Shown piece by piece: positions 16,553 through 28,517 of a stretch of 64,000 nucleotides of DNA (positions within the stretch are counted from its first letter, which is position 1; the number at the start of each line of letters is the position of its first letter). The stretch lies in sequence record NC_021529.2; one strand, 5' to 3'. Below the pieces are notes generated by a model. The model searched no databases. It saw only the letters and a list, made by a program, of their open reading frames with translations, and had not been told where the DNA came from. Position numbers and translations under genes: made by a program.

Positions 16553-17083
16553 ATGACAGAACCAACACTGACTAACTGGAACGAGCTGAAAGACAATAGC
16601 TTAGTGTATCGTATCAATAACGAAATACTACACCCAATGGGATATGCTGCTGTACTCAATACCGAAACTGGTACGAGTGATCGCGTGCTCAAAACAGATA
16701 AGTTTGAATTCCCAGTCGATGTACACGACAAACATAAAAACAATGTCACTATGTCTGGACTACTCGCGACTCATAAAGCTGTTGTGTCTCAAATCGCTGC
16801 TAAGTTTGAGCTAGATGAAATATGGCATAACATAATCGATAAAACAGATTGGTATTTCACGTGCGACGAAGAAATAGTAGAAGAGTCATACGAGTTCTCA
16901 TTCGCTGAAAATCTCAATGAATTCGAAGCAGGAAACTACTACTCTATCGAAGTATACGGAACATCTATCTGGCGCTCAACTGATAAAGAATACTTCTTAG
17001 TAGTTGGTAATGATGGTTGCGGTAACCAAGATATGTATCTGTTCTCGGCAAGAAATCTCGTAAAAGAAATAGAAATTTATTAA
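16553..17083 (+). CDS. hypothetical protein
   Basis: ATG 16553 preferred over the TTG start; acidic protein. Confidence 0.65.
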   Translation: MTEPTLTNWNELKDNSLVYRINNEILHPMGYAAVLNTETGTSDRVLKTDKFEFPVDVHDKHKNNVTMSGLLATHKAVVSQIAAKFELDEIWHNIIDKTDWYFTCDEEIVEESYEFSFAENLNEFEAGNYYSIEVYGTSIWRSTDKEYFLVVGNDGCGNQDMYLFSARNLVKEIEIY

Positions 17084-17085
17084 AC

Positions 17086-17159
17086 AAAAGGGTTGACACA
17101 TGTCAGCCCTTTTTGTATTATAGCTACATCAAAACGAAACACCAAAGGAAAACATTATG
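17086..17159 (+). promoter_or_regulatory. Early promoter/hairpin cassette
   Basis: AAAAGGGTTGACA-CA-TGTCAGCCCTTTTT; TTGACA 17093, 17 bp spacer, TATTAT 17116. Confidence 0.85.
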
Positions 17160-17381
17160 AACATCAACGACACTATCAAACAAGTTATCGCATACCGTGC
17201 TACCGAAGAAGGTAAACATGCTCATATCGCTGTATACCCTCGTAACTTCTTTCTTCAATCACCTTCAGTTCTTGTATGGCACCCAGAACAAGATAACAAA
17301 GATGTCGCTATCTCTGAACAAGAACTTAAAGAATGGCGCGCTGCCGCTCGTGTTCATAAATTCATCGACATCGTTAAGTAA
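17157..17381 (+). CDS. hypothetical protein
   Basis: First gene after cassette. Confidence 0.7.
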   Translation: MNINDTIKQVIAYRATEEGKHAHIAVYPRNFFLQSPSVLVWHPEQDNKDVAISEQELKEWRAAARVHKFIDIVK

Positions 17382-17390
17382 GGATTCATT

Positions 17391-17567
17391 ATGATTTCAA
17401 CATTCGCTGCTATACTAATAGCTGTCATGCTACTCGTGCTGTCAGTCAATGAGTTCGAAAACTTTCTAGAAGATGACATCCGCGCTTATCTAATCATTGC
17501 AGCAACTGCTCTTGCAATTACTAATGCATACGCTGTATTCATACTAGAACACCATCTCATACCATAA
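17391..17567 (+). CDS. Two-TM microprotein (58 aa)
   Basis: Read by hand: MISTFAAILIAVMLLVLSVNEFENFLEDDIRAYLIIAATALAITNAYAVFILEHHLIP; AGGA SD. Confidence 0.65.
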   Translation: MISTFAAILIAVMLLVLSVNEFENFLEDDIRAYLIIAATALAITNAYAVFILEHHLIP

Positions 17568-17576
17568 GGATAGACA

Positions 17577-17771
17577 ATGACTGTAATCATACTATTTCAA
17601 ATGAGTATATTCGCACTGCTGTTGATGATACTCGTTAATGACAATAACAAATTCCTAGCAGATGGTGTCAAAGAAATACTACTCGTGTCTGCTATCACTA
17701 TATGTCTGATCAACGCTTTCTTTATCAGTCAATACGCAAGCATGTATAACATGCTAATGGAGAATCTATGA
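17577..17771 (+). CDS. Two-TM microprotein (64 aa)
   Basis: Two hydrophobic helices; AGGA SD. Confidence 0.65.
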   Translation: MTVIILFQMSIFALLLMILVNDNNKFLADGVKEILLVSAITICLINAFFISQYASMYNMLMENL

Positions 17772-17929
17772 GCTTACTAACTATGATAACGCTGTTCGTC
17801 GTGCTATCAATCGCAACAGCATCTATCGCTATCAGCTTTATCAACAACCCAGGCTTCATTAAACTAACGCTTTTCGCTGTGCTAGGCTTTATCGCTTATG
17901 TGCTAATGAATGTAATAGTCGCATCATGA
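17768..17929 (+). CDS. Two-TM microprotein (53 aa)
   Basis: Read by hand: MSLLTMITLFVVLSIATASIAISFINNPGFIKLTLFAVLGFIAYVLMNVIVAS; ATGA overlaps. Confidence 0.65.
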   Translation: MSLLTMITLFVVLSIATASIAISFINNPGFIKLTLFAVLGFIAYVLMNVIVAS

Positions 17930-18015
17930 GTGATATACCAATCAATTACATCATGCTTCTGCTATGCGTTCTAGCAGGTGTAGCTGGATGGTGCTTGAGC
18001 GATATCAGCAAATGA
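17926..18015 (+). CDS. Single-TM microprotein (29 aa)
   Basis: Read by hand: MSDIPINYIMLLLCVLAGVAGWCLSDISK; ATGA overlap. Confidence 0.5.
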   Translation: MSDIPINYIMLLLCVLAGVAGWCLSDISK

Positions 18016-18034
18016 AAACTATATAAGGCAAACT

Positions 18035-18214
18035 ATGTTTATTATCTCAATCTCTATCTTTCTATCTGCAATCTATCTAATATGGACAGATAATAGTACA
18101 GATAACCTAGAAAGAGTATTAGCGCAAGTGATACTGCTAATGGCAGCAGCAATCAACTGCGTCGCTCAATGGGCTCTAAGCGACATTCTATCAGTAACGA
18201 TGACTATATCATGA
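18035..18214 (+). CDS. Two-TM microprotein (59 aa)
   Basis: Read by hand: MFIISISIFLSAIYLIWTDNSTDNLERVLAQVILLMAAAINCVAQWALSDILSVTMTIS. Confidence 0.6.
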   Translation: MFIISISIFLSAIYLIWTDNSTDNLERVLAQVILLMAAAINCVAQWALSDILSVTMTIS

Positions 18215-18327
18215 TGTACCGCAAAAACGCTTAGAATACCACACAGACACGCTCAGAGCATAGGACAATACTCATTACCATACTCATTGTTTTTGATATA
18301 TCGCACCCCGGTTCGTTTTCTACAACA

Positions 18328-18436
18328 TGTGGGTAAATCTGTGGATAATATGTGGGTGAGATTGTGCATAAGTGTCTGAGATATGTGGATAAAAACAGAA
18401 ATCAATTGTGGATAAGTCTGTGGATTACGTGGATAA
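18328..18436 (-). repeat. Array of 8 co-oriented DnaA-box-like 9-mers
   Basis: + strand TGTGGGTAA 18328, TGTGGATAA 18340, TGTGGGTGA 18351, TGTGCATAA 18363, TGTGGATAA 18384, TGTGGATAA 18407, TGTGGATTA 18419, CGTGGATAA 18428 (reverse complement of TTATCCACA), in a 370-bp intergenic gap. Confidence 0.85.
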
Positions 18437-18584
18437 GTTTTTTGGCTAAAAATAGCAAAAGGCTCATCGGGAGTGGTGGGAATCGCATTTGAACGAATGT
18501 GGTAAAGAACTTACACCATTTCTGAAAAATAATTTGACACCGCTTGCGCTTATGTGAGAAGATAGCGCGGTGAGAGGAGAGAAT

Positions 18585-19115
18585 ATGAAACAACTGATAT
18601 TAAAAGAGCGCATGAGTTTGCGAGTGGTAGACCAAGAGCAAGTGCATAGAGTGCCTTACCATACTCTGCGACATGAGAATCGAACTGGTTTGCCGTTTAA
18701 TGTCGAGTGCAAAGGTGATGGTTGTGTTATGTGTTCGCATGTTGACGGTTTGATTGCAGCACAGAAAGGTTCAGAGGCGTTTCATTTACGAGCTAAAGTG
18801 CGATACCAAGTGCGAGTAATCGACTTGAATGATGTATCGAGTGGTGTACAGATGTTGTGTTTTGGTCGCTCGTTGATTGAAGCCGTGACTGATGCGCTTG
18901 AGGGTTCAAACGAGCGTGAGTATCGACCACTTGAGATACGTTCATCTGACTTTGCTCATGGGTTTCGTAGTTACAGAGATTCATTTGCTGGTGATGTTAT
19001 TCGTACAGCAATTAAGATGAAATTCAAGCCAACTGATGAGTACAAGTTACCGTTTTACATTACGCCGTATGATGCTGATGCAATTCTGCGACATTTATTG
19101 AAGGGGTTAACATGA
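18585..19115 (+). CDS. gp32-like Zn-binding ssDNA-binding-fold protein (truncated, no acidic tail)
   Basis: H-x15-C-x4-C-x2-C, then RAKVRYQVRVIDL...VQMLCFGRSLIEAV, recalling the gp32 core; strong GAGAGGAG SD. Confidence 0.5.
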   Translation: MKQLILKERMSLRVVDQEQVHRVPYHTLRHENRTGLPFNVECKGDGCVMCSHVDGLIAAQKGSEAFHLRAKVRYQVRVIDLNDVSSGVQMLCFGRSLIEAVTDALEGSNEREYRPLEIRSSDFAHGFRSYRDSFAGDVIRTAIKMKFKPTDEYKLPFYITPYDADAILRHLLKGLT

Positions 19116-19258
19116 TTACATTAGCTTTGTTCTATATGAGTCGAGATATGAATTACAATCATCGACCAAGTGACTTGTATATGGGTACAGTGATATTAGA
19201 CTTTGCCTTAATCGCGACTGTGTTTTGTGGTATTATGATGTTTACGGGAAATTGGTAA
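19112..19258 (+). CDS. Small membrane protein (48 aa)
   Basis: Read by hand: MITLALFYMSRD...ILDFALIATVFCGIMMFTGNW; overlaps both neighbours. Confidence 0.55.
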   Translation: MITLALFYMSRDMNYNHRPSDLYMGTVILDFALIATVFCGIMMFTGNW

Positions 19259-19872
19259 TGAAAAAGATTGAGTTACATAAGAAAGTAGTAGAGAAGAAAG
19301 GTGTCTTGCCAGATCAAGTTATGGTGAGAGTTGAGACGTATTACCGTTCATTGAGTGGTTATTTGAATCATCTAAGTGCTGAGCATAAGTTACGTGGCAT
19401 TACTTATTCTACGCATATGCTTGTTACAGAGGATGGTGCATTCTTCAGTATTGACGAAGACCGTTTGAATGGTGATAAGCAGACACGTGAAAAGCACGAT
19501 GGTCAGTTAGTTTCAGTACATGCGCGTTTACAGTTGCCATCGAAAGATTGGGATTGGTATCCTTGTAAGTGGAAAAGCGGTCGTCTTGTGTATACGTACA
19601 AAGAGCAAGATTTCGTTGAAGAAGAGCACGAGCTAGTGGTTGGTGAGATTATCGACATTTATGCTGCTGATGATGCGCAAGCACGTTCTCCACATGATGC
19701 AACTATCATTGTGAGTCGTCCGAAGCAAATCGTTGTTGAAGCGTATGGTCGACTTGCGATATTCCACGTTAGTAATACAGAGAACAATGGTGATTTGATT
19801 TCTGATTGTGGTGAGTATCGTTTAAGTGGCAAGTACGCTGCTAGTGAATACGATGAAGAGCTTCATTCTTGA
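19258..19872 (+). CDS. hypothetical protein
   Basis: ATG in TAATG overlap; no family recognised. Confidence 0.65.
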   Translation: MKKIELHKKVVEKKGVLPDQVMVRVETYYRSLSGYLNHLSAEHKLRGITYSTHMLVTEDGAFFSIDEDRLNGDKQTREKHDGQLVSVHARLQLPSKDWDWYPCKWKSGRLVYTYKEQDFVEEEHELVVGEIIDIYAADDAQARSPHDATIIVSRPKQIVVEAYGRLAIFHVSNTENNGDLISDCGEYRLSGKYAASEYDEELHS

Positions 19873-19973
19873 TGATTGTTTCAATCTCAACGTGGGTGTT
19901 TTGCAAGTATTGCAATTACCCATTCAAAGGTGATTCATCTGGCAATAAGTTATGTGCTAAATGTCAAATGTAA
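19872..19973 (+). CDS. Micro zinc-finger protein (33 aa)
   Basis: Read by hand: MIVSISTWVFCKYCNYPFKGDSSGNKLCAKCQM (CxxC...CxxC). Confidence 0.55.
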   Translation: MIVSISTWVFCKYCNYPFKGDSSGNKLCAKCQM

Positions 19974-19983
19974 AAAGTTAAAG

Positions 19984-20063
19984 AAAAGGGTTGCGCTATG
20001 CAGCCCTTTTTTGTATTATCTCTATATCGAAACGACATCGACTAACAAAGAGAGAATATTATG
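19984..20063 (+). promoter_or_regulatory. Early promoter/hairpin cassette
   Basis: AAAAGGGTTGC-GCTAT-GCAGCCCTTTTTT; TTGCGC 19991, 17 bp spacer, TATTAT 20014. Confidence 0.8.
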
Positions 20064-20417
20064 TTTAACGCTACTGAAGTACTAAACCAACTTACACAAT
20101 CAAACAACGGTCAATCTCGCTTAGTTGCAATGACTGGTGCTAAGAACTTGCTTCAGTCTGAAGAGAAACAGTTTGTTTCATTCAAGCTACCGAAAGCAGT
20201 ACGTGGTATTAACTACGTGAAAATCACTCTTAACGCATCAGATCTATATGATGTTGAGTTTGGTAAAGTCTCGAACAAAGCTTGTCCAGAAATGAAAAAG
20301 CTTGGCATTAAAGTGATGCTGCCGAATTACGACGTGAAAACAGTAGTAAACGACGTATACAATGACTCGTTAAAAGCTTGTTTCGAACGTGAAACGACTC
20401 TTTTACTATCTCTATAA
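20061..20417 (+). CDS. Conserved phage hypothetical protein
   Basis: AMTGAKNL...INYVKITLNASDLYDVEF. Confidence 0.7.
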   Translation: MFNATEVLNQLTQSNNGQSRLVAMTGAKNLLQSEEKQFVSFKLPKAVRGINYVKITLNASDLYDVEFGKVSNKACPEMKKLGIKVMLPNYDVKTVVNDVYNDSLKACFERETTLLLSL

Positions 20418-20427
20418 GGAAAATATT

Positions 20428-20790
20428 ATGCCTATTCCATCAATTGTTGGTAATATCGCTGCTGATTTGCTTGAAGACACCGAGCTTTTGAGCGATAGTC
20501 GGTCTTATACTTGCTTCATGCTAGAAGACAAAGCATACAATCACGTCGAACACAAGATTGATTTGATTGAGTACATTCACATTTCAGGCATTGAATTCAT
20601 CTTGGCAATTCGTGATGGTAAAGTGAAACTACCATTTGAACTAGACGAAGATGCTAAGCGAGACCTCAATACAATGATCGCTGACCAATATGCAGGTGCG
20701 TTTGTACACGTTTTAGCAGCCGATGATATGGAAAAATTCCATATTATTCGTTCAGAATGGTTAAAATTTCTTGCAAAAGAGGCAAAATAA
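20428..20790 (+). CDS. Paralog family A, copy 1
   Basis: YTC...AFVH...RSEWLKFL. Confidence 0.75.
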   Translation: MPIPSIVGNIAADLLEDTELLSDSRSYTCFMLEDKAYNHVEHKIDLIEYIHISGIEFILAIRDGKVKLPFELDEDAKRDLNTMIADQYAGAFVHVLAADDMEKFHIIRSEWLKFLAKEAK

Positions 20791-21206
20791 TGAAGAAAAT
20801 CATACTTTTAGGCGCATTTTCAGCTATTTTGACGGGTTGTGGTGGTGATTGGGAGACATTAGAGCGCGTATATCTGATGCAGAGAACGCCAGCACAGCAA
20901 GCTATTGTTGACGAATGGGCTGTTCAATGTAAAGAGAAAGAGCTTGACCAAGGGTTGGTTGCTGGTTGTACAACGCTTGCTGAAGCGACATATGCGAATT
21001 ACGGTGATAGAGTTGCATACGCTACTTACGTTAGAAACGGTCGTGTGTATAAGCGTACGCCTTGTAATGTCGATGGGCTTACTGAACGAGAAGGTTTAGT
21101 TTGCAGTGGTAAAGTTGAAAAAATCGTAATTAAATCTGAAAAATTGCTTGACGTACGCCCCCAAAACCGCGATAATAGCTCTATCGAAACGAGATACGTT
21201 AACTAG
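20790..21206 (+). CDS. Lipoprotein
   Basis: MKKIILLGAFSAILTGC lipobox; four further Cys. Confidence 0.75.
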   Translation: MKKIILLGAFSAILTGCGGDWETLERVYLMQRTPAQQAIVDEWAVQCKEKELDQGLVAGCTTLAEATYANYGDRVAYATYVRNGRVYKRTPCNVDGLTEREGLVCSGKVEKIVIKSEKLLDVRPQNRDNSSIETRYVN

Positions 21207-21219
21207 AGAGAACATTATG
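21148..21219 (+). promoter_or_regulatory. Early promoter cassette
   Basis: TTGACG 21148, 17 bp spacer, GATAAT 21171; TATCGAAACGAGATAC and GAGAGAACATTATG. Confidence 0.75.
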
Positions 21220-21441
21220 ACTGATTACGAATTCGACGCACTATCAAACGCAGCACAAGTTGCACACATGAACGTTGAAGTTGTTGAAACTGTAAAGACA
21301 GTAAACGACGTGAACTACGTAAAGCGCGAATTCTTGCTTGATGGTGAAGAGTACAAAGCACCACACTTCGAGTGCAACTGCACTATCAAGCACACAGAAG
21401 AAGAAATTCTTGCGTGGATTGACGAAGTATTTTTTGCTTAG
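21217..21441 (+). CDS. hypothetical protein
   Basis: First gene after cassette. Confidence 0.65.
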   Translation: MTDYEFDALSNAAQVAHMNVEVVETVKTVNDVNYVKREFLLDGEEYKAPHFECNCTIKHTEEEILAWIDEVFFA

Positions 21442-21453
21442 AGAGAGAACATT

Positions 21454-21777
21454 ATGACTAATTCAGATATTCAAGACATCAAAGACGCTGCTATTACTGT
21501 ACTAGAACGTCGCAAGTTCGACGATTGGACTTGCTGTCAAATTGCAATGCTTCTACCTGATGACGAATCGATCCGAATCGCTGCTCTTAACTACATCGAA
21601 TCGTTTCGTGATGCGTTTATCGATACTCTAGGTCTACCAGAGCATATCGCATCAGAAGCGGTAAACTACACGTCATTTTTAGACTGTATTGAAATCGACA
21701 CTAAAGGTGAGTTGTCTATGGAATACCTTCGTGAATCATGGTTGAAGTTTCTCATTGCTAATGTGGAGAAAAACTAA
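21454..21777 (+). CDS. Paralog family A, copy 2 (divergent)
   Basis: WTCC...RESWLKFL. Confidence 0.7.
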   Translation: MTNSDIQDIKDAAITVLERRKFDDWTCCQIAMLLPDDESIRIAALNYIESFRDAFIDTLGLPEHIASEAVNYTSFLDCIEIDTKGELSMEYLRESWLKFLIANVEKN

Positions 21778-22157
21778 TGACTGATTTAGAGATTCAAGAA
21801 CAAGTACGTTCTCAAGCAGCGCGTATTCTTAAAGAAAACGACTTTCATCATATCTGTATGTACACGTGTAATGAAATCGAGTATGCGATTGTCGAAGGCA
21901 ACCAGTTTACTGCTGAAGAAAAACCGCATGTGCGTTACGTAGTTAGTGATTACATCGAAACTCAAGCTACGAGTTTTCTTCATGCATTACGCAATGACAG
22001 CTCAATTCTAGGGTTTAGTATTGGTCGTATTTTACCATTCGGCGCGTTTATTCATTCAATCGCACGTGTTGATGTTGGTATAGGGAATGTTGATAAATCT
22101 CGATTTACAGCAGCACGAGCAGCTTGGTTGAAATACCTTTCTACTGGAGAAATGTAA
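21777..22157 (+). CDS. Paralog family A, copy 3
   Basis: YTC...AFIH...RAAWLKYL. Confidence 0.75.
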   Translation: MTDLEIQEQVRSQAARILKENDFHHICMYTCNEIEYAIVEGNQFTAEEKPHVRYVVSDYIETQATSFLHALRNDSSILGFSIGRILPFGAFIHSIARVDVGIGNVDKSRFTAARAAWLKYLSTGEM

Positions 22158-22513
22158 TGGAAAAAGTACTACGCGAAGTAGCAAAAGAGCTACTTGAAGA
22201 AACCGATCTTCTAAAAGACCGAGGCTTTTTTAGCTGTCATGAGCTACGTGACCGCGCAAAACATCGAGGTGTCAATGCATTCAAAGTTGAAATACTAATT
22301 GACCGACTTGGTGAAAAATTCGTTGAGCGTATCAGAGCACGTAAAAGCGGTGTCGATATCGCTGAGTTTGCATATCGTCGTAATGAAAACCGTAGTTACG
22401 TTGGTGCTTTTGTTCATGCGTATTCGTACGTATATGAAGACGAAATTAACGTAAACACGTTATTCGAGATTCGCAAAGCATGGCTTAAATTCGTAGTAGA
22501 GAGTGAATACTAA
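22157..22513 (+). CDS. Paralog family A, copy 4
   Basis: FSC...AFVH...RKAWLKFV. Confidence 0.75.
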   Translation: MEKVLREVAKELLEETDLLKDRGFFSCHELRDRAKHRGVNAFKVEILIDRLGEKFVERIRARKSGVDIAEFAYRRNENRSYVGAFVHAYSYVYEDEINVNTLFEIRKAWLKFVVESEY

Positions 22514-22887
22514 TGATTGATGAACTAGTCAAAGAAACCGCAGCGAGTATGCTTGAAGATAAAAGTCTGCTTTGCGACGTGAAAGAATATTCATGTTGTG
22601 TTATCGTCGATAAGATGGTAGAGAATCATGGCTACGCGCCTCATACTGTATATCAGCATTTAGATGTAAAAGGCGTTGAGTTCTTACAGCTTATTTTAGA
22701 CAAGCCAGAAACACTATGCTTTGAATTATCACCTGATACACTCGCTATGGTAAAAGAAGACATCGAAGAACAAGACCCAACGGCGTTTGTTCATTATATT
22801 TCTCGTAATAGCACTGATGACTTGAGCGACGTTCGTTTTAAAAACGTACGTACAGCATGGTTAACTTTCTTAGCAGAAGGGAATTAA
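22513..22887 (+). CDS. Paralog family A, copy 5
   Basis: YSC...AFVH...RTAWLTFL. Confidence 0.75.
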   Translation: MIDELVKETAASMLEDKSLLCDVKEYSCCVIVDKMVENHGYAPHTVYQHLDVKGVEFLQLILDKPETLCFELSPDTLAMVKEDIEEQDPTAFVHYISRNSTDDLSDVRFKNVRTAWLTFLAEGN

Positions 22888-22888
22888 G

Positions 22889-23410
22889 ATGACATTAGAA
22901 GAACGCCTTGCATTGCTCGAACAAGAGCTAAGCACCACACCACCAGCGCAAATACTAGCTGAATTGAAGTCATACGAGCCTAAAGGTTCGCTAGTGGATG
23001 ATTTCATTCTTGAAACACTCATCCCGACTCTAGCTAAATCCAAAGCACATGAGCTACTAGCTGATGAGCGTATGGTCACAGACATGGAAGTTTACACGTG
23101 CAACGAGATCAACAACTTTGTAATTGATGCGCTTGAAATCGACGATTACGACGAAGCACAAGCGGTTCGTTTTTATCTTCAAGATCAATCTAAGGCGTTT
23201 GTTGAAAGCGTTGTATCTGATGCAGAATCTGTAGTAGGGTTTACACCATCTGACTATGCATTATCTGAATTACAGGTAAGTCTTGATAATTGTCGTTACC
23301 AAGGTGCGTTTATTCATGTAATGGTAATGAACGACTACGGCTATAAAGACGAGACGAAGTTCCCATCTGCTCGTACAGCTTGGTTGAAATTTATCTTAGA
23401 AAATGCTTGA
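22889..23410 (+). CDS. Paralog family A, copy 6 (N-terminal extension)
   Basis: YTC...AFIH...RTAWLKFI. Confidence 0.75.
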   Translation: MTLEERLALLEQELSTTPPAQILAELKSYEPKGSLVDDFILETLIPTLAKSKAHELLADERMVTDMEVYTCNEINNFVIDALEIDDYDEAQAVRFYLQDQSKAFVESVVSDAESVVGFTPSDYALSELQVSLDNCRYQGAFIHVMVMNDYGYKDETKFPSARTAWLKFILENA

Positions 23411-23435
23411 CAGACATTTCATACATCTGTATTCT
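23407..23435 (+). promoter_or_regulatory. sigma70-type promoter
   Basis: TTGACA 23407, 17 bp spacer, TATTCT 23430. Confidence 0.7.
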
Positions 23436-23458
23436 ACGTGTATTGAAAAGGAGATAAC

Positions 23459-23854
23459 ATGAAACTACGTACACTAATCATCGAAGGCGCAGCAGAGCTA
23501 GTTCAAGACAAAGAGCTTTTATCAGACCAATCCCAATTCAGTTGCGGTCTAGTTGCAATGCACTGTTGTAAACACGTTAAATCATCTAGACAATTTCGAG
23601 TTTACGACGAAGCGCAGAAAATCATTCGTCTTGAAGCGAAGGTGTTTTTGAAAAAGATACTAGCTGATGACGAATCGATTATCGGGTTTAGCTTATCTGA
23701 TGAACTACGCGAAAAAACAGAAGGTATGCTTGGTTACGAGTGTAATGCCTTTGTTCATACGCTATCAACAATAGCTGAAGACGTTCGCGACGCGAATCGA
23801 TTCACTGCTGTACGTAAAGCATGGTTAACTCACTTAGCAAATGGAGAAGTATAA
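23459..23854 (+). CDS. Paralog family A, copy 7
   Basis: FSC...AFVH...RKAWLTHL. Confidence 0.75.
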   Translation: MKLRTLIIEGAAELVQDKELLSDQSQFSCGLVAMHCCKHVKSSRQFRVYDEAQKIIRLEAKVFLKKILADDESIIGFSLSDELREKTEGMLGYECNAFVHTLSTIAEDVRDANRFTAVRKAWLTHLANGEV

Positions 23855-24222
23855 TGTACGATTTAATGGCAGCAAAAGCACGTAAGATTCTAAGCGATTC
23901 TGATTTCATGACAAACGAGCACGAGTTTAGTTGCCTTGCTATTGCTGGTTATGTTGAGCGTAACAGCGACATGCGTTACCGTGATGCAAGTGCAGCAGTG
24001 AAAGAGCTTGGTGCATCGTTTGTTTACCAAGTGCTAAAAGACGACGTATTCATGCTTGGTTTTGAGCTATCAGATTATGCTCGTGCGAAGATCGCATATG
24101 AAGTCGACCAGTTTGTTCATGATATCGCGTCATCATCTGAAGACAATATCGACCCAGAGCTGTTTCTACGTGCTCGTAAATCATGGTTAGAGTTTGTCAT
24201 TGAAAATGGGGAAGTGCAATGA
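23854..24222 (+). CDS. Paralog family A, copy 8
   Basis: FSC...QFVH...RKSWLEFV. Confidence 0.75.
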   Translation: MYDLMAAKARKILSDSDFMTNEHEFSCLAIAGYVERNSDMRYRDASAAVKELGASFVYQVLKDDVFMLGFELSDYARAKIAYEVDQFVHDIASSSEDNIDPELFLRARKSWLEFVIENGEVQ

Positions 24223-24575
24223 TTTCATTGTTAGTTAAAGTAGAAGCATTCAAGTTGCTTGAAGACAAAGACCTTCTACGTGATACATGCCAGTACACAT
24301 GTAATATTCTAGAAGACAACGCGCATCAAGTCAGTACATACGGTCGTATTGCTATTGGTGAATACATCGAAGAGAAAGGTCTAGAGTTTTTACAGTGCGT
24401 TCTAGACGAAGAAATCAATTTCAGTTTTGATTTTGACCGTGAATCGATTGCTGAATCTGTTCGTGATAAATTCCCTGGTGCATTTGTGAATCATATTTCA
24501 GGTGAAGACATAGAGTGTTTTGCCGAAGTTCGCAGAGCATGGTTAGAGTTTTTGACAGTGGAGCGTGACGTATGA
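24219..24575 (+). CDS. Paralog family A, copy 9
   Basis: YTC...AFVNH...RRAWLEFL. Confidence 0.75.
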   Translation: MISLLVKVEAFKLLEDKDLLRDTCQYTCNILEDNAHQVSTYGRIAIGEYIEEKGLEFLQCVLDEEINFSFDFDRESIAESVRDKFPGAFVNHISGEDIECFAEVRRAWLEFLTVERDV

Positions 24576-24922
24576 AATTAGAAGAACTAGCAGTAGTTCA
24601 TCCGTATTACTGTTCAGACAGTAATTACTACAGTAATGACGCGGGGTGTTCGTTTGAGACAGCGACTGACTTTCTAGAAGAGTTCAACGACGCTGACATT
24701 GACATGAACTTGGTTTTTCGTTGGGATGTCAAGCCGCATTTAGACGCTGAAACAGAAGAAGTCACAGACAAGTTCTACGCTGATGTGTTTATGATACACC
24801 AACGCAAAGGTATTTTCGCGCCGTATCACATCGAGTCTATTACAGAGGACGAAGCATCTAGTTTCGCTGAGTATCTACGTAGACATAAAGAAGCATTAAC
24901 TAAGTTATGGGAGCCGTTATGA
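24572..24922 (+). CDS. Conserved phage hypothetical protein
   Basis: HPYYCSDSNYYS...NLVFRWDV...HQRKG. Confidence 0.7.
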   Translation: MKLEELAVVHPYYCSDSNYYSNDAGCSFETATDFLEEFNDADIDMNLVFRWDVKPHLDAETEEVTDKFYADVFMIHQRKGIFAPYHIESITEDEASSFAEYLRRHKEALTKLWEPL

Positions 24923-25155
24923 TTTTCTTCAATATCTTATTGCTATACGTGTTCATTGCTGTTATGCTGTATATGTACAGCGCGGGTTGTGAATACGCTA
25001 TGTACAAGTTAAAAGGTCACCTAGATAGCAAGTTTCCAATCACATTCTTTGACACTCACAAGATGATTGCTGCTGGTTGTTTCTTGTGGTTACCTATTCT
25101 TATGTTCATTGTTCACAATGAAATCGTGAATTTGAAATCGAAGTTCAAGAGGTAG
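24919..25155 (+). CDS. Small membrane protein
   Basis: Two hydrophobic segments. Confidence 0.6.
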   Translation: MIFFNILLLYVFIAVMLYMYSAGCEYAMYKLKGHLDSKFPITFFDTHKMIAAGCFLWLPILMFIVHNEIVNLKSKFKR

Positions 25156-25157
25156 AC

Positions 25158-25463
25158 ATGAAAGACTACAATCGAACGTTAGTAGGGATCAACTACAAGA
25201 GCGGTATTAAGGTAGCGTTTTGGGTTTACAACATGAAAGTGCGTTCTCGCGGTTCATCGTATGAGAGAATCAATTGGTCTTCAGCTACTCCGCCAGTTGA
25301 TCCTCATATGCAAGAGCGACTAAAGCACATATCAAAGCATGTGTTAATCGGTGAGCCGCCTATTTCGTTAGCGGGTGATATTAATGACATTGAAAGCGTA
25401 TGGAATCTTTATTCATACGAAGGTGAAGATGGTAAAAAGCCAGAGGAAGAAGATGAAATTTGA
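25158..25463 (+). CDS. hypothetical protein
   Basis: Packed ORF. Confidence 0.6.
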   Translation: MKDYNRTLVGINYKSGIKVAFWVYNMKVRSRGSSYERINWSSATPPVDPHMQERLKHISKHVLIGEPPISLAGDINDIESVWNLYSYEGEDGKKPEEEDEI

Positions 25464-25644
25464 TTTTGTATTAGACGTATTCTTGACAGTAGTTATGCTG
25501 TTCGTCGGTGTCCTTCAGCTATTTGTTGGTGCATTGCTGTTAATCTTAGGTGTTATCATTGGTGTAATTGCGATTGTTGGTGGTGTTATTATTACTGCTA
25601 TTGTATGGCCATTGATTCAGCTTTACGAATGGATCGCGAAATGA
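25453..25644 (+). CDS. Very hydrophobic small membrane protein
   Basis: About 45 consecutive hydrophobic residues. Confidence 0.6.
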   Translation: MKFDFVLDVFLTVVMLFVGVLQLFVGALLLILGVIIGVIAIVGGVIITAIVWPLIQLYEWIAK

Positions 25645-25961
25645 TAGACTTAAAATCGCTTATCAAGAACGTGAAACAAGCTCGTGATCATCCAGAACTC
25701 GACTTATGTCGCTGTAGCGTATGTCATACTGATTTCAAAGTCAGTGAATGTATTCACGACTACGGTCATCATGACGGTTGGGAAATGCCGGCTTATACAG
25801 AGATTCAATGTCCTGATTGTGACGAAGGTTGTATTGAAGATTTCTGGTCAAGTGATAAAGCAGTTCTTGAGTACGGTGAATATCTACAAGAGAACGACCC
25901 AGAGCGTTTTGACGAGTACAAGACGTATTATCCAGATGTGTATGGAGAGAAAAATGTATAA
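25641..25961 (+). CDS. Zn-ribbon protein
   Basis: CRCSVC...CPDCDEGC. Confidence 0.65.
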   Translation: MIDLKSLIKNVKQARDHPELDLCRCSVCHTDFKVSECIHDYGHHDGWEMPAYTEIQCPDCDEGCIEDFWSSDKAVLEYGEYLQENDPERFDEYKTYYPDVYGEKNV

Positions 25962-26109
25962 TGGTGATATGAACACGCCTGCGGGATTAGATTTCGACAA
26001 GCGTTCAGAGACGTATGAAGATTATTTGCTAAAGAGCAAAGACAACTCTGATTACTCGCGCCGAGTGAAGCGAGCTATTAAAGCGAAGCAAGCTAGACGT
26101 GGTTATTAG
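25954..26109 (+). CDS. Small basic hypothetical protein
   Basis: GGAGAG SD before ATG 25954. Confidence 0.55.
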   Translation: MYNGDMNTPAGLDFDKRSETYEDYLLKSKDNSDYSRRVKRAIKAKQARRGY

Positions 26110-26110
26110 T

Positions 26111-26320
26111 ATGAAAATTCGCAAAGGCAGTGTTTTAGAAGAGACGTTGTTAGGTGATGTGTTCAACTACAAGATCGTTTCTCCAGTGACGAGCGTTGAC
26201 AAAAAGCAGTCTTTTACAATGCAAGTTGTTTCTGTAGCGGGTAAGCAAGTCGTGAATGGTTATAGTGCCAACGTCACCATTTACAAAACATCTAGCAGAT
26301 TTAAAGTACGAGAGTATTAG
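26111..26320 (+). CDS. hypothetical protein
   Basis: Packed ORF. Confidence 0.6.
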   Translation: MKIRKGSVLEETLLGDVFNYKIVSPVTSVDKKQSFTMQVVSVAGKQVVNGYSANVTIYKTSSRFKVREY

Positions 26321-26329
26321 AGAGGAAAT

Positions 26330-26764
26330 ATGATTTATCGATTTTGGGAAACACCAACTAGCGATTGTCTAATTGAAATCATACATGATGGTAAAGAAGA
26401 CGGTGAGCGTGCTTACATCACCGACATGATTGATTTCTATCATACAGAACACGGTCGTCAAGCGTTGTTGGGTCATACTGATGGTTGGGGAACTGTTAAC
26501 TTTACCAAGTATGATATTCGCGAATTAAAGTGTCTTGGTCGTATTGAGACTAAACCTCTTACATTATCAGCGAATGACAAGTCTGTTTTGAGTCGTTGCA
26601 TTGATAAAGAAGGGTTTAATTACGCTATGTTTGATTACAGCGATTATCAATCAGTCGAACGTAACGTTGTTCAGTCGCGTGAGTTTCATGAGCTACGCAA
26701 CGGCTTGATTGATGCGAAGAGCAAACTACAAACTTGGTTAAGGATGCAGGGGATTGACGCATGA
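26330..26764 (+). CDS. hypothetical protein
   Basis: GAGG SD; packed ORF. Confidence 0.65.
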   Translation: MIYRFWETPTSDCLIEIIHDGKEDGERAYITDMIDFYHTEHGRQALLGHTDGWGTVNFTKYDIRELKCLGRIETKPLTLSANDKSVLSRCIDKEGFNYAMFDYSDYQSVERNVVQSREFHELRNGLIDAKSKLQTWLRMQGIDA

Positions 26765-26913
26765 TAAAATACAAAGTTCGACCAGCGTTGTTTGGTCTAT
26801 TATGGAAAGTTGTGCTTCATGCTAACAGTTATGATCGTGCGACTATGAGTTTTCACACTACGTTTGCAGGTGCTATTGATTGTGCGCGTGCGTTGCAAGA
26901 AGAGGAGCTGTGA
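26761..26913 (+). CDS. hypothetical protein (50 aa)
   Basis: Read by hand: MIKYKVRPALFG...; ATGA overlap. Confidence 0.55.
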   Translation: MIKYKVRPALFGLLWKVVLHANSYDRATMSFHTTFAGAIDCARALQEEEL

Positions 26914-26915
26914 TA

Positions 26916-27239
26916 ATGAGTCAGATGGAATACAACAAAGGCGTATTGACGCTTATTGATCAATCGCCTGAGAGTCTAGCTGAAGAGCTTATTACAGAGT
27001 TACCGTTATATTACGATTCTAAGCTTGAATGCTTACGTGACAACTCAGAAGCACATGGTCTAGTTTTTATTCTAGACAAGTGTTACCGTGTCACGTTTGA
27101 GCGAGAAGCAGAAGACTTGTATATGATTGCGAATGCAGACGTACAAGACAACGGTGATATTCATTTCGAAACGTATCATTACAATGGTGGTGCGCATTGG
27201 ACTGAAGTCGTAGAAGGGGCGTTACGTGAAAATCGATGA
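26916..27239 (+). CDS. hypothetical protein
   Basis: GAGGAG SD; ends HYNGGAHWTEVVE. Confidence 0.65.
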   Translation: MSQMEYNKGVLTLIDQSPESLAEELITELPLYYDSKLECLRDNSEAHGLVFILDKCYRVTFEREAEDLYMIANADVQDNGDIHFETYHYNGGAHWTEVVEGALRENR

Positions 27240-27516
27240 ATTCATAGCAACGCCGTATGTACGTTCTAGACTATCGATGGTCGACAAATACGGAGATGTT
27301 GTGGTCACTTGTTCTAGTGAGTGGCATATGGATCATGTTGAGCGTGTGTTACTTGAGAACGCTAAGCTCAAAGAAGCACTTGGGAATACGCTTACGCATA
27401 TCGATCAGGTAGAAAACAGTATGATGCGAATGGGCGTTGATGAAGTTGTACACGAAGATCTACCACGCGATTTACCGGAGTGGGATTTTCAAGAGTACGT
27501 GCAGTTGAGCAAATGA
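27226..27516 (+). CDS. hypothetical protein
   Basis: GTG start; packed ORF. Confidence 0.55.
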   Translation: MKIDEFIATPYVRSRLSMVDKYGDVVVTCSSEWHMDHVERVLLENAKLKEALGNTLTHIDQVENSMMRMGVDEVVHEDLPRDLPEWDFQEYVQLSK

Positions 27517-27562
27517 TATTACTTAATCTATTAGCAACTGTGATTGCTGTATACGGTGTATT

Positions 27563-27865
27563 ATGACCAGAATTGAAGAACTAGAAACGCAGATTCGAAT
27601 GTTGAAAGACGAGTTGAATGAAGAGCGTAATCGCTGTCATCATACTCGCATTACATACGAATACAAATCAAACACGGGTAATTACGATCCAACGTGTGAT
27701 TCGTATTGGGTCAATGTGAAGTGCATTGATTGTAATCATCGTATGACGTTTGATTCTGATGAAGACAATACCAATTACAGAATGGTTGGTGAAATCGGGT
27801 CGCAAGGTCGAGTTGAGACTCACGACTATGACACATATTTGAAAGTTAAGGGGATACTAGAATGA
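27563..27865 (+). CDS. hypothetical protein with Cys/His motifs
   Basis: Coiled coil, then CHH...CIDCNHR. Confidence 0.65.
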   Translation: MTRIEELETQIRMLKDELNEERNRCHHTRITYEYKSNTGNYDPTCDSYWVNVKCIDCNHRMTFDSDEDNTNYRMVGEIGSQGRVETHDYDTYLKVKGILE

Positions 27866-28197
27866 AATACGCACGTTACACTGAGTTCAACGATCATGAA
27901 GGTGAAACCTGGCATCGATTTATTCCAATGACGGATCCATGTCTAGACAAGTTTCTAGATGTGATGAAGATCGTTGAAGATTCAGACGATACCTTTTCAA
28001 TCGAGATTGACGGCGAAGGTAAGGTTGTTCAGTACGATGAATCATACGTTAAAGTGCTAGTTGACGAATCAGCTATGTACATGAACGGTTACATGGATGC
28101 ATATGCCGTGTGCAACATCAACGAAGACGCTTTAATATACACGAGCGACTACGAAGAAGCGTACGAAATGCTATACAAGATGGGGTGGGCGAAATGA
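27862..28197 (+). CDS. hypothetical protein
   Basis: EFNDHEGETWHRFI; ATGA overlaps. Confidence 0.65.
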   Translation: MKYARYTEFNDHEGETWHRFIPMTDPCLDKFLDVMKIVEDSDDTFSIEIDGEGKVVQYDESYVKVLVDESAMYMNGYMDAYAVCNINEDALIYTSDYEEAYEMLYKMGWAK

Positions 28198-28517
28198 GTC
28201 AAGCATTAACAGACTTAGCGATCAAGTTCAACGAAGCGCATAATTACAGCACAGAGCCAAATGAGTTGTACGAGACGTTCATTGAATGTCTAAGCAAACG
28301 CATCGTACAAGAAGAAACCGAATCTGAGCATCGTTGGTATGACATTCGTTCTGTCGTACACGCTGTTGATATCGACGGGACAGAGCGTTACTTCGAGACG
28401 TTTGACTATCACATTACTGGTGATAACTCGGCGCGTGATATGGATTTGGACATGCCGACGCTTGAAGACGTGGTAGAAGTTCATCCGCATCAAGTTACAA
28501 TGACAGTTTACAAGTAA
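28194..28517 (+). CDS. hypothetical protein
   Basis: ATGA overlap. Confidence 0.65.
   Translation: MSQALTDLAIKFNEAHNYSTEPNELYETFIECLSKRIVQEETESEHRWYDIRSVVHAVDIDGTERYFETFDYHITGDNSARDMDLDMPTLEDVVEVHPHQVTMTVYK

Follow-up and report, generated by a model that had tools for sequence, protein, structure and literature searches.

The first 64,000 bases of the genome of Vibrio phage nt-1 (bases 1-64000 of HQ317393 / NC_021529; Straboviridae, genus Mylasvirus; host Vibrio natriegens), here referred to as the window, contain nine open reading frames (ORFs) which code for small proteins of one family. The origin was established by a megablast of 20000-25000, which matched nt-1 at 100% and at identical coordinates. 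These ORFs correspond to the deposited coding sequences ORF042 and ORF045-052, all of which are annotated as 'hypothetical protein'. An earlier note on this DNA had described them as a nine-member tandem family of proteins of 107-173 amino acids (aa) with invariant Cys and Arg-x-x-Trp motifs. Each of the nine was confirmed as an nt-1 coding sequence at the coordinates and with the length claimed, and all nine are intact, with 0 internal stops and 0 frameshifts. The array holds a family with a confident predicted fold and without a solved relative, and one of its members, ORF049, carries an N-terminal segment resembling the bacterial antitoxin CmdA.

The nine-gene family and its locus

In an alignment of the nine products, the motifs [YFW][ST]C and R-x-x-W-L-x-[FYH]-[LIV] were identified in 9/9 copies and FVH or FIH in 7/9 copies, the His column being occupied by Asp in ORF045 and by Asn in ORF052. 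The motif counts given in the earlier note, for Cys, for FVH/FIH and for Arg-x-x-Trp-Leu, were reproduced by this alignment. Eight of the copies are connected by pairwise BLASTP with E values of 1e-5 to 1e-20, and the same eight were recovered at 1e-16 to 1e-24 by leave-one-out hidden Markov models (HMMs), which were searched against the 668 stop-to-stop ORFs of the window and gave an E value of at least 0.09 for the best unrelated ORF. ORF045 is a weak member, with no significant pairwise match and a leave-one-out E value of 0.0012. When its orthologue group (nt-1, CZ01, QD01, VS2) was compared with the other 30 members of the family by hhalign, a probability of 97.9% was obtained (E = 5.5e-13), and by this comparison and a full-length match to PHROG 4354 it was confirmed, on the level of sequence profiles, that ORF045 belongs to the family. 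PHROG 4354, an entry of unknown function, matches 9/9 copies end to end, with E values of 2.8e-18 to 1.2e-37 and a coverage of positions ~3-129 of 130. The nine-member paralogue family is real and lies far beyond chance. A tenth copy was searched for across the window and was not found.

No characterised family had been recognised for these proteins, and this was borne out by the negative outcome of Pfam, NCBIfam and PDB searches on the levels of sequence and fold, the family being catalogued only as PHROG 4354. Single copies as well as profiles of 9 and 32 members served as queries in the sequence searches, and no credible match was obtained for the nine copies or for the 32 members of the wider family alignment; stray matches did not recur and all had E > 0.005. 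When the nine-copy alignment was used in a word-indexed protein search, no proteins other than those of the window were returned. Matches to PDC-M10A, PDC-M04B and others in the PADLOC library were rejected, each having been obtained for one member without recurring across the 32. Readings of the motifs as HEPN-like R-x(4-6)-H, as an HD domain or as a redox C-x-x-C were dropped, because the second required residue is not conserved in the alignment columns.

The PHROG 4354 entry represents the same family, since all nine proteins are full-length matches, and it contains no function, structure or description. The tandem expansion, the copy-number variation and the domain fusion reported here are not part of the entry. 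In term searches of the genome papers on nt-1 and phi-pp2, no description of the array, its copy-number variation, the missing solved relative of the fold or the antitoxin-like fusion was found, and a paper on the plasticity of Schizotequatrovirus lists the family solely as 'unknown function' (PMC12028318).

The genes of the locus share one strand, with overlapping stops and starts, and are arranged as follows:

20061..20417, + strand: ORF041, upstream anchor, PHROG 9437 (unknown function), not a family member; 75% aa identity to KVP40.0175 and 86% to QD01
20428..20790, + strand: ORF042, family copy 1, 120 aa; PHROG 4354 E = 9.5e-33
20790..21441, + strand: ORF043 and ORF044, insertion splitting the array, not family members; no match to the family HMM
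21454..21777, + strand: ORF045, family copy 2, 107 aa, the most divergent copy; PHROG 4354 E = 2.8e-18
21777..22157, + strand: ORF046, family copy 3, 126 aa; PHROG 4354 E = 6.7e-27
22157..22513, + strand: ORF047, family copy 4, 118 aa; PHROG 4354 E = 4.3e-30
22513..22887, + strand: ORF048, family copy 5, 124 aa; PHROG 4354 E = 1.2e-37
22889..23410, + strand: ORF049, family copy 6, 173 aa, two modules; PHROG 4354 E = 3.9e-37, residues 44-172
22889..23023, + strand: CmdA-like (PD-T4-9_B) module, ORF049 residues 1-45; PADLOC match
23459..23854, + strand: ORF050, family copy 7, 131 aa; PHROG 4354 E = 1.8e-34
23854..24222, + strand: ORF051, family copy 8, 122 aa; PHROG 4354 E = 7.2e-33
24219..24575, + strand: ORF052, family copy 9, 118 aa; PHROG 4354 E = 5.3e-31
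24572..24922, + strand: ORF053, downstream anchor, PHROG 7880 (unknown function), not a family member; 61-62% aa identity to KVP40, VH7D, VS2 and QD01

The designation as a tandem array holds for the eight contiguous copies (21454-24575), but not for ORF042, which is set apart by ORF043 and ORF044. Among the loci compared, homologues of the latter two genes were identified only in CZ01, and since they are present only in nt-1 and CZ01, ORF043-ORF044 is regarded as a lineage-specific insertion into the array. The N-terminus of ORF043 resembles a lipoprotein signal with a lipobox cysteine. The eight-gene block has seven junctions, five of which overlap by 1 or 4 nucleotides (nt), one has a 1-nt gap and one a 48-nt gap (23411-23458); ORF052 and the downstream anchor ORF053 overlap by 4 nt. 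A GGAG-type ribosome-binding site for the next gene was found inside the final codons of most copies. The translational coupling proposed in the earlier note thus finds sequence support in the overlapping junctions and in the GGAG-type sites at the ends of the upstream copies.

The first ~60 kilobases (kb) of nt-1 form a hyperplastic region rich in promoter-early stem-loop (PeSL) elements (PMC4122927), for which PeSL-associated indels, a PeSL consensus and 'half PeSLs' have been described (PMC4122927). The following promoter elements were identified at the locus:

19982..20019, + strand: PeSL upstream of ORF041; stem-loop 19982-20012
21148..21176, + strand: sigma-70-like promoter candidate in the 3' end of ORF043, upstream of ORF044; 10/12 consensus match
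23407..23435, + strand: sigma-70-like promoter candidate in the block's only intergenic gap (23411-23458); 10/12 consensus match

The element at 19982-20019 has the published nt-1 PeSL pattern, consisting of an A-run/G-run stem-loop, a -35 hexamer (19991-19996) and a -10 hexamer (20014-20019) separated by a 17-nt spacer, a ribosome-binding site and a start codon. Early promoters had also been proposed inside the array, at 21148 and 23407. Both are 10/12 sigma-70 matches, but the number of such matches in the region is not above chance (19 observed versus 15.1 +/- 4.1 in shuffled sequence), and the two lack PeSL features: the stem-loop sought at 21148 and 23407 is absent from both, and each deviates from the published hexamer pattern. 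The candidate at 23407 is plausible because it lies in the sole gap of the block. For the candidate at 21148, the -10 and leader before ORF044 (21172-21195) are 79% identical to the PeSL leader at 20015-20038 (repeat D12), and this likeness to a true PeSL would fit ORF044, or the ORF043-ORF044 insertion, having brought such promoter sequence with it. The PeSL leader repeat also occurs directly upstream of ORF042 (20401-20422, 82% identity), where it resembles the 'half PeSLs' (PMC4122927).

In its location in the hyperplastic region, in the PeSL upstream and in the indels relative to KVP40 at the same spot, the locus is similar to the PeSL-bounded cassettes of T4-like phages. However, the published model is one of a shuffling of unrelated ORFan cassettes (PMC4122927), whereas here a single family has been multiplied, and most junctions of the array have no intergenic space and therefore no PeSL. 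An inverted repeat of 21 nt (90% complementary) is located at the ORF042/ORF043 junction (20784-20804) and the ORF053/ORF054 junction (24918-24938); it brackets most of the array and may be a chance occurrence. An Rfam scan of 18-27 kb gave no match.

Predicted fold, distribution and divergence

The AlphaFold model of ORF042 is all-helical with seven helices and has a predicted local distance difference test (pLDDT) of 94.3 and a predicted template modelling score (pTM) of 0.88. The model of ORF049 is also all-helical (pLDDT 92.7, pTM 0.85), with helices 3-13 and 19-28 preceding the family domain. When compared with BFVD, the ORF042 model matched family members only. Five other nt-1 copies and a phi-pp2 relative gave template modelling (TM) scores of 0.77-0.88 and its own entry 0.99, while a relative from ValKK3 was a weaker match (TM 0.64, E = 0.15); among the matches at TM 0.77 or above, those not identical to the query have 19-34% sequence identity. 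ORF045, ORF046 and ORF048 were absent among the BFVD matches, and their membership rests on sequence profiles. The predicted structures superpose, so unrelated folds, which would speak against paralogy, were not seen. That they do so at such identities also agrees with the conserved scaffold and variable remainder which had been proposed for the family. In a Foldseek comparison with the PDB, the ORF042 and ORF049 models gave no match (best E 1.7 and 3.0, TM < 0.4). As judged by the models, the members share one fold, for which no solved relative was detectable by Foldseek.

Conserved positions were derived from a 32-member alignment with a mean column identity of 25% and are given in ORF042 numbering:

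Ala11: 30/31 members
Ser/Thr28: 31/31 members
Cys29: 31/31 members; begins helix 3
Phe57: 32/32 members
Phe92: 32/32 members
His94: 29/32 members; in helix 6
Arg108: 32/32 members; last helix
Trp111: 32/32 members; last helix
Leu112: 31/32 members; last helix

In the ORF042 model, Arg108, Trp111 and Leu112 are located on the same face of the last helix, the conserved face of which consists of Phe, Arg, Trp, Leu and Phe at i, i+4, i+7, i+8 and i+10. The isoelectric point is 4.2-4.8 in 6/9 copies and 5.7-6.9 in 3/9.

By tblastn, the family was identified in 32/50,697 phage records of INPHARED, all of them from KVP40-like Vibrio phages. An exhaustive profile search of 1.84 billion cluster representatives returned 34 proteins, nine of them from the window; two of the 34, P0028 and P0030, are long repetitive proteins which were matched in many short stretches and are probably spurious. 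A profile scan of IMG/VR with one sub-alignment gave no confirmed locus. Judged from these searches, the PHROG 4354 family is very rare and almost confined to Vibrio phages. The most divergent members were found on metagenomic contigs of another, N4-like phage type, with arrays of 4-6 copies. On contig L008 (6981-8755), four copies follow two adjacent genes, the second of which has a T7-like RNA polymerase domain, and on contig L014 (278-2966) six copies are present in a row. Contigs L009 and L010 contain one copy and show DNA similarity to N4-like phages such as Pollock and FSL SP-058. With copies both on KVP40-like genomes and on N4-like contigs, arrays of the family are present in early regions of two or more phage lineages that are not related to each other. 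On L009, a gene of the Acb2/Tad1-hairpin anti-defence family (1109-1351) is located ~2 kb from the single copy, on the opposite strand.

In KVP40-like genomes the array is always flanked by the ORF041-like and ORF053-like anchors. The number of copies between them, as counted by HMM, is nine in nt-1, nine in CZ01, six in F86, four and one weak in VH7D, three in VS2, three in QD01 and two in KVP40. While the anchor proteins of nt-1 and KVP40 are 75% and 61% identical, the identity of any nt-1 family copy to either KVP40 copy is at most 35%. The neighbour-joining tree is star-like, and beyond close relatives clear one-to-one orthologues are few. The array locus is among the most variable spots between otherwise syntenic genomes. 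DNA similarity between copies is restricted to their 3' ends, in stretches of 35-39 nt with 61-86% identity which encode the Arg/Trp/Leu helix, and these stretches could be substrates for unequal recombination.

In the earlier note, the divergence of the copies was taken to suggest diversifying selection. The ratio of nonsynonymous to synonymous substitution rates (dN/dS) was calculated by the Nei-Gojobori method for 35 orthologous gene pairs of nt-1 and CZ01, comprising the nine copies and 26 flanking genes. The pooled dN/dS was 0.31 for the nine copies versus 0.24 for the 26 flanking genes. Six copies gave values of 0.08-0.56 and two gave no ratio (dS = 0); ORF046, with 1.54, is the only copy above 1, a value based on few substitutions and a dS of 0.03. 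For the core PHROG 4354 gene in 18 related phages, a published table gives a dN/dS of 0.39 and seven recombination events, and no gene of its neighbourhood has a lower pairwise identity there (PMC12028318 Table S8). With these pooled, single-copy and published values, the claim of diversifying selection was not upheld: fast long-term divergence and copy turnover are real, but ongoing diversifying selection is unsupported. The dN/dS values rather indicate that each copy is a functional gene under purifying selection.

Across adjacent genes, dS shifts from ~0 (ORF049-051) to 0.26-0.30 (ORF047-048). Such abrupt changes point to a fine-scale recombination mosaic across the hyperplastic region. Over 16553-28517, the nt-1/CZ01 dS was seen to switch from gene to gene between ~0 and 0.26-0.39. 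For the PHROG 4354 gene of phage 6E35-1a, no virion-proteome signal was reported (PMC12028318 Table S8).

A CmdA-like module in ORF049

ORF049 is longer than the other copies because of a 45-residue N-terminal extension. This extension matches the PADLOC model PD-T4-9_B at model positions 4-44 of 77, with E values of 1.1e-6 for the whole protein and 1.4e-7 for the extension alone. PD-T4-9 is CmdTAC, a toxin-antitoxin-chaperone (TAC) abortive-infection system, the second gene of which codes for the antitoxin CmdA (PMC9519451); PD-T4-9_B was identified as the antitoxin component from the operon order. CmdA has been described as having two helices at its N-terminus, while the remainder is a long, disordered region which confers chaperone addiction and carries a ClpXP tag at its end (PMC11618068). 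During infection, a capsid protein titrates the SecB-like chaperone, upon which CmdA is degraded and the mRNA ADP-ribosyltransferase CmdT is freed (PMC11618068). Stabilised CmdA was shown to neutralise CmdT (PMC11618068).

The same CmdA-like extension is present in the QD01 and VS2 copies of the ORF045 orthologue group, which match PD-T4-9_B at model positions 1-46 of 77 with E values of 8.6e-13 (QD01_182) and 9.3e-13 (VS2). Over 39 aa, the module of ORF049 shares 49% identity with that of QD01_182, as compared to 21% for the attached family domains. The CmdA-like module is thus fused to two different paralogue lineages. In an F86 copy (L005:6233-6742, 170 aa), a ~50-residue hydrophobic N-terminal addition was identified, which is unrelated to the CmdA-like module and has no PD-T4-9_B match; this suggests that the family domain tolerates differing N-terminal additions. 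One of the L014 copies (1039-1578) has a different addition of ~70 residues at its N-terminus.

The likeness to CmdA is limited to the N-terminal ~45 residues of the ORF049, QD01 and VS2 proteins, which match the N-terminus of PD-T4-9_B and are predicted to form two short helices. The CmdA tail (PD-T4-9_B positions 47-77) is unmatched in all three proteins, and the C-terminus of ORF049 lacks the described ClpXP tag. Instead of the disordered addiction tail, ORF049 contains a folded domain of 128 residues, the confidently predicted PHROG 4354 domain at residues 44-172. ORF049 further differs from CmdTAC in that no ADP-ribosyltransferase toxin or SecB-like chaperone is encoded next to it, its neighbours being family paralogues, and in that it is encoded by a lytic phage and not by a bacterial or prophage defence island. 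PD-T4-9_A and PD-T4-9_C were searched in the nine copies and in six neighbouring nt-1 proteins, and no match was obtained. With one defining feature of CmdTAC present and two absent, ORF049 is not a member of this system; it may nevertheless act in an antitoxin-like manner.

An HMM of the module identified further relatives. In Vibrio phage 1.103.O the module is an ORF of its own, 51 aa long (E = 2.7e-16), and in phage K354 it forms the N-terminus of a protein of 105 aa whose tail is unrelated (E = 4e-15). On phage contigs it is found as ORFs of 46-72 aa, which adjoin primase and polymerase genes. The positions matched by this HMM on contigs were:

L012:2441-2596, L013:2456-2773, L016:5001-5177, L019:187-405: CmdA-like module elsewhere, in Vibrio or marine phages

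In phage 1.103.O, the module ORF is located directly upstream of the neck protein gene. For phage 6E35-1a, a stand-alone 49-aa ORF with the same PADLOC match was published and flagged 'Defense?' (PMC12028318). Toxin-like or SecB-like neighbours of the orphan modules were not found. The occurrence of orphan modules and of fusions without partners suggests a mobile antitoxin fragment, which moves among carrier contexts in Vibrio phages. ORF038 was considered as a stand-alone copy of the module in nt-1 and was rejected, as it has no similarity.

Possible roles of the array

By association, the family is most readily seen as a counter-defence or host-interaction repertoire, an interpretation to which we give a probability of about 0.4. 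In this reading, the locus is an operon in the hyperplastic region of a KVP40-like Vibrio myovirus which would be transcribed early and translated in a coupled manner, and its products are nine small (~120 aa), mostly acidic, all-helical proteins that are probably not part of the virion. The copies would serve as a set of host-directed binders or inhibitors, with counter-defence as the most likely purpose, and the diversity of this set would be kept by copy gain, loss and recombination, not by ongoing positive selection within each copy. ORF049 would represent a stable orphan antitoxin mimic, in which the CmdA-like helices are retained and the folded family domain replaces the addiction tail and the protease tag. 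Such a protein would keep a CmdT-like ADP-ribosyltransferase toxin neutralised after the degradation of the host antitoxin. The family domain might have a role as a stabilising platform, as a second binding surface or as the carrier of a Cys/His/Arg site.

The proposal for ORF049 follows the precedent of phage orphan antitoxin mimics, which are described to counter DarTG in T4-like phages and in vibriophage ICP1. These cases are similar to ORF049 in that a phage gene resembles the antitoxin half alone and the toxin is not carried. They differ in that they mimic DarG-type enzymes, whereas ORF049 resembles a short helical antitoxin segment and has this segment fused to a domain with no solved fold relative. 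An anti-defence repertoire had been among the options of the earlier note, and the CmdA-like fusion provides circumstantial support for it. In the published table on related phages, no anti-defence model was matched by the PHROG 4354 gene (PMC12028318). A likeness to polymorphic-toxin immunity arrays was not found, as there is no toxin-like gene near the nt-1 array: at 15-30 kb, all 46 features are small hypothetical proteins with no toxin-like gene among them, and no Pfam immunity families were identified.

The hosts of KVP40-like phages comprise many Vibrio species with varied defences, and the means by which these phages withstand them are still to be explained (PMC12028318). With the antitoxin-like fusion, an anonymous group of ORFans gives rise to a concrete hypothesis, namely that degron-less mimics act against capsid-sensing toxin-antitoxin-chaperone systems. 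If ORF049 is such a mimic, it would belong to a new class of counter-defence and would illustrate how a short piece of an antitoxin is passed from one carrier domain to another; otherwise, the family still offers structural genomics a clearly delimited target in which Cys, His and Arg are conserved. A bolder version of this hypothesis, which we regard as doubtful, extends it to the entire array. Here, the PHROG 4354 domain would be a new fold serving as a protease-resistant stand-in for the unstable tail of TAC antitoxins, and every one of the nine copies would act as a stable pseudo-antitoxin or toxin binder against a different Vibrio abortive-infection toxin. With such a panel, a phage would for the first time be seen to counter TAC systems and to carry antitoxin mimics as a multi-copy array.

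Several points weigh against a counter-defence repertoire. The link to CmdA was obtained with one HMM library and spans ~45 residues, the first 14 of which are of low complexity. The module is absent from 8/9 nt-1 copies, so that its extension to the core domain is guilt by association. Bacterial relatives of the module were found neither by word search, nor by tblastn against plasmids, nor in two contig profile scans, and CmdTAC-like systems in the Vibrio hosts therefore remain a presumption. The published flag on the stand-alone module reads 'Defense?' rather than anti-defence, the PHROG 4354 gene has no entry under anti-defence HMMs where it was tabulated (PMC12028318), and PADLOC gave nothing recurrent across the 32 members. 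Early expression, host binding and partners are all inferred rather than observed. In addition, the near-invariant Cys, His and Arg are no less compatible with a catalytic or metal site than with a protein that only binds.

The latter point leads to the main rival, which we consider possible but unlikely. It holds that the proteins are small enzymes or cofactor- or metal-binding proteins, with a site to which the start of helix 3 would contribute the [ST]-Cys, helix 6 the His and the last helix the Arg; they could, for example, be thiol-dependent hydrolases or transferases whose target is a macromolecule of the host or the phage, and the substrate would vary between paralogues. The conservation of [ST] (31/31), Cys (31/31), His (29/32) and Arg (32/32) at only 25% mean column identity speaks for this rival. 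The Cys is placed at the N-terminus of a helix in both the ORF042 and the ORF049 model, and helix N-termini are a common setting for reactive thiols. However, the His is replaced in ORF045, ORF052 and one other member, no match to any enzyme was obtained by fold or sequence (Pfam/NCBIfam/PDB, Foldseek), and it would be uncommon to find a single enzyme present as nine diverged copies side by side.

Somewhat less probable is a role of the proteins as host-takeover regulators, which would use the invariant face of the C-terminal helix for binding to a conserved host machine, like RNA polymerase or a sigma factor, the ribosome, a protease or a chaperone, and would have no part in counter-defence. 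Many T4 host-takeover factors are small, acidic, helical proteins of the early region, a description which also applies to the array products. One face of the last helix is the most conserved element of the family, and in ORF049 the family domain occupies the place of the chaperone-binding tail of CmdA. A single conserved target, however, leaves the 2-9 highly diverged copies and their rapid turnover unexplained, and neither AsiA-type nor other solved phage regulators were retrieved in the fold searches.

In a further alternative, which we rate as improbable, the array would be a phage-borne defence or superinfection exclusion system, with the module marking a toxin-antitoxin-like system directed against competing phages. 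PADLOC is a library of defence systems, and the stand-alone module of 6E35-1a is listed among defence matches. The lipoprotein-like gene ORF043 lies inside the array, and phage lipoproteins are often exclusion factors. Against this, no PD-T4-9_A or PD-T4-9_C partner was identified in the nine copies, in the six neighbours or beside the orphan modules, and the match is restricted to the N-terminal helices of the antitoxin.

That the array is a by-product of recombination in the hyperplastic region, with most copies being functionless passengers, is very improbable: the region is known for PeSL-associated indels, the 3' ends contain microhomologies and copy number varies freely, but the selection data contradict a lack of function (dN/dS of 0.08-0.56 in six copies and > 1 only in ORF046), the fold and the key columns are kept across 32 members at ~25% identity, the nine frames are intact and CZ01 retains all nine copies.

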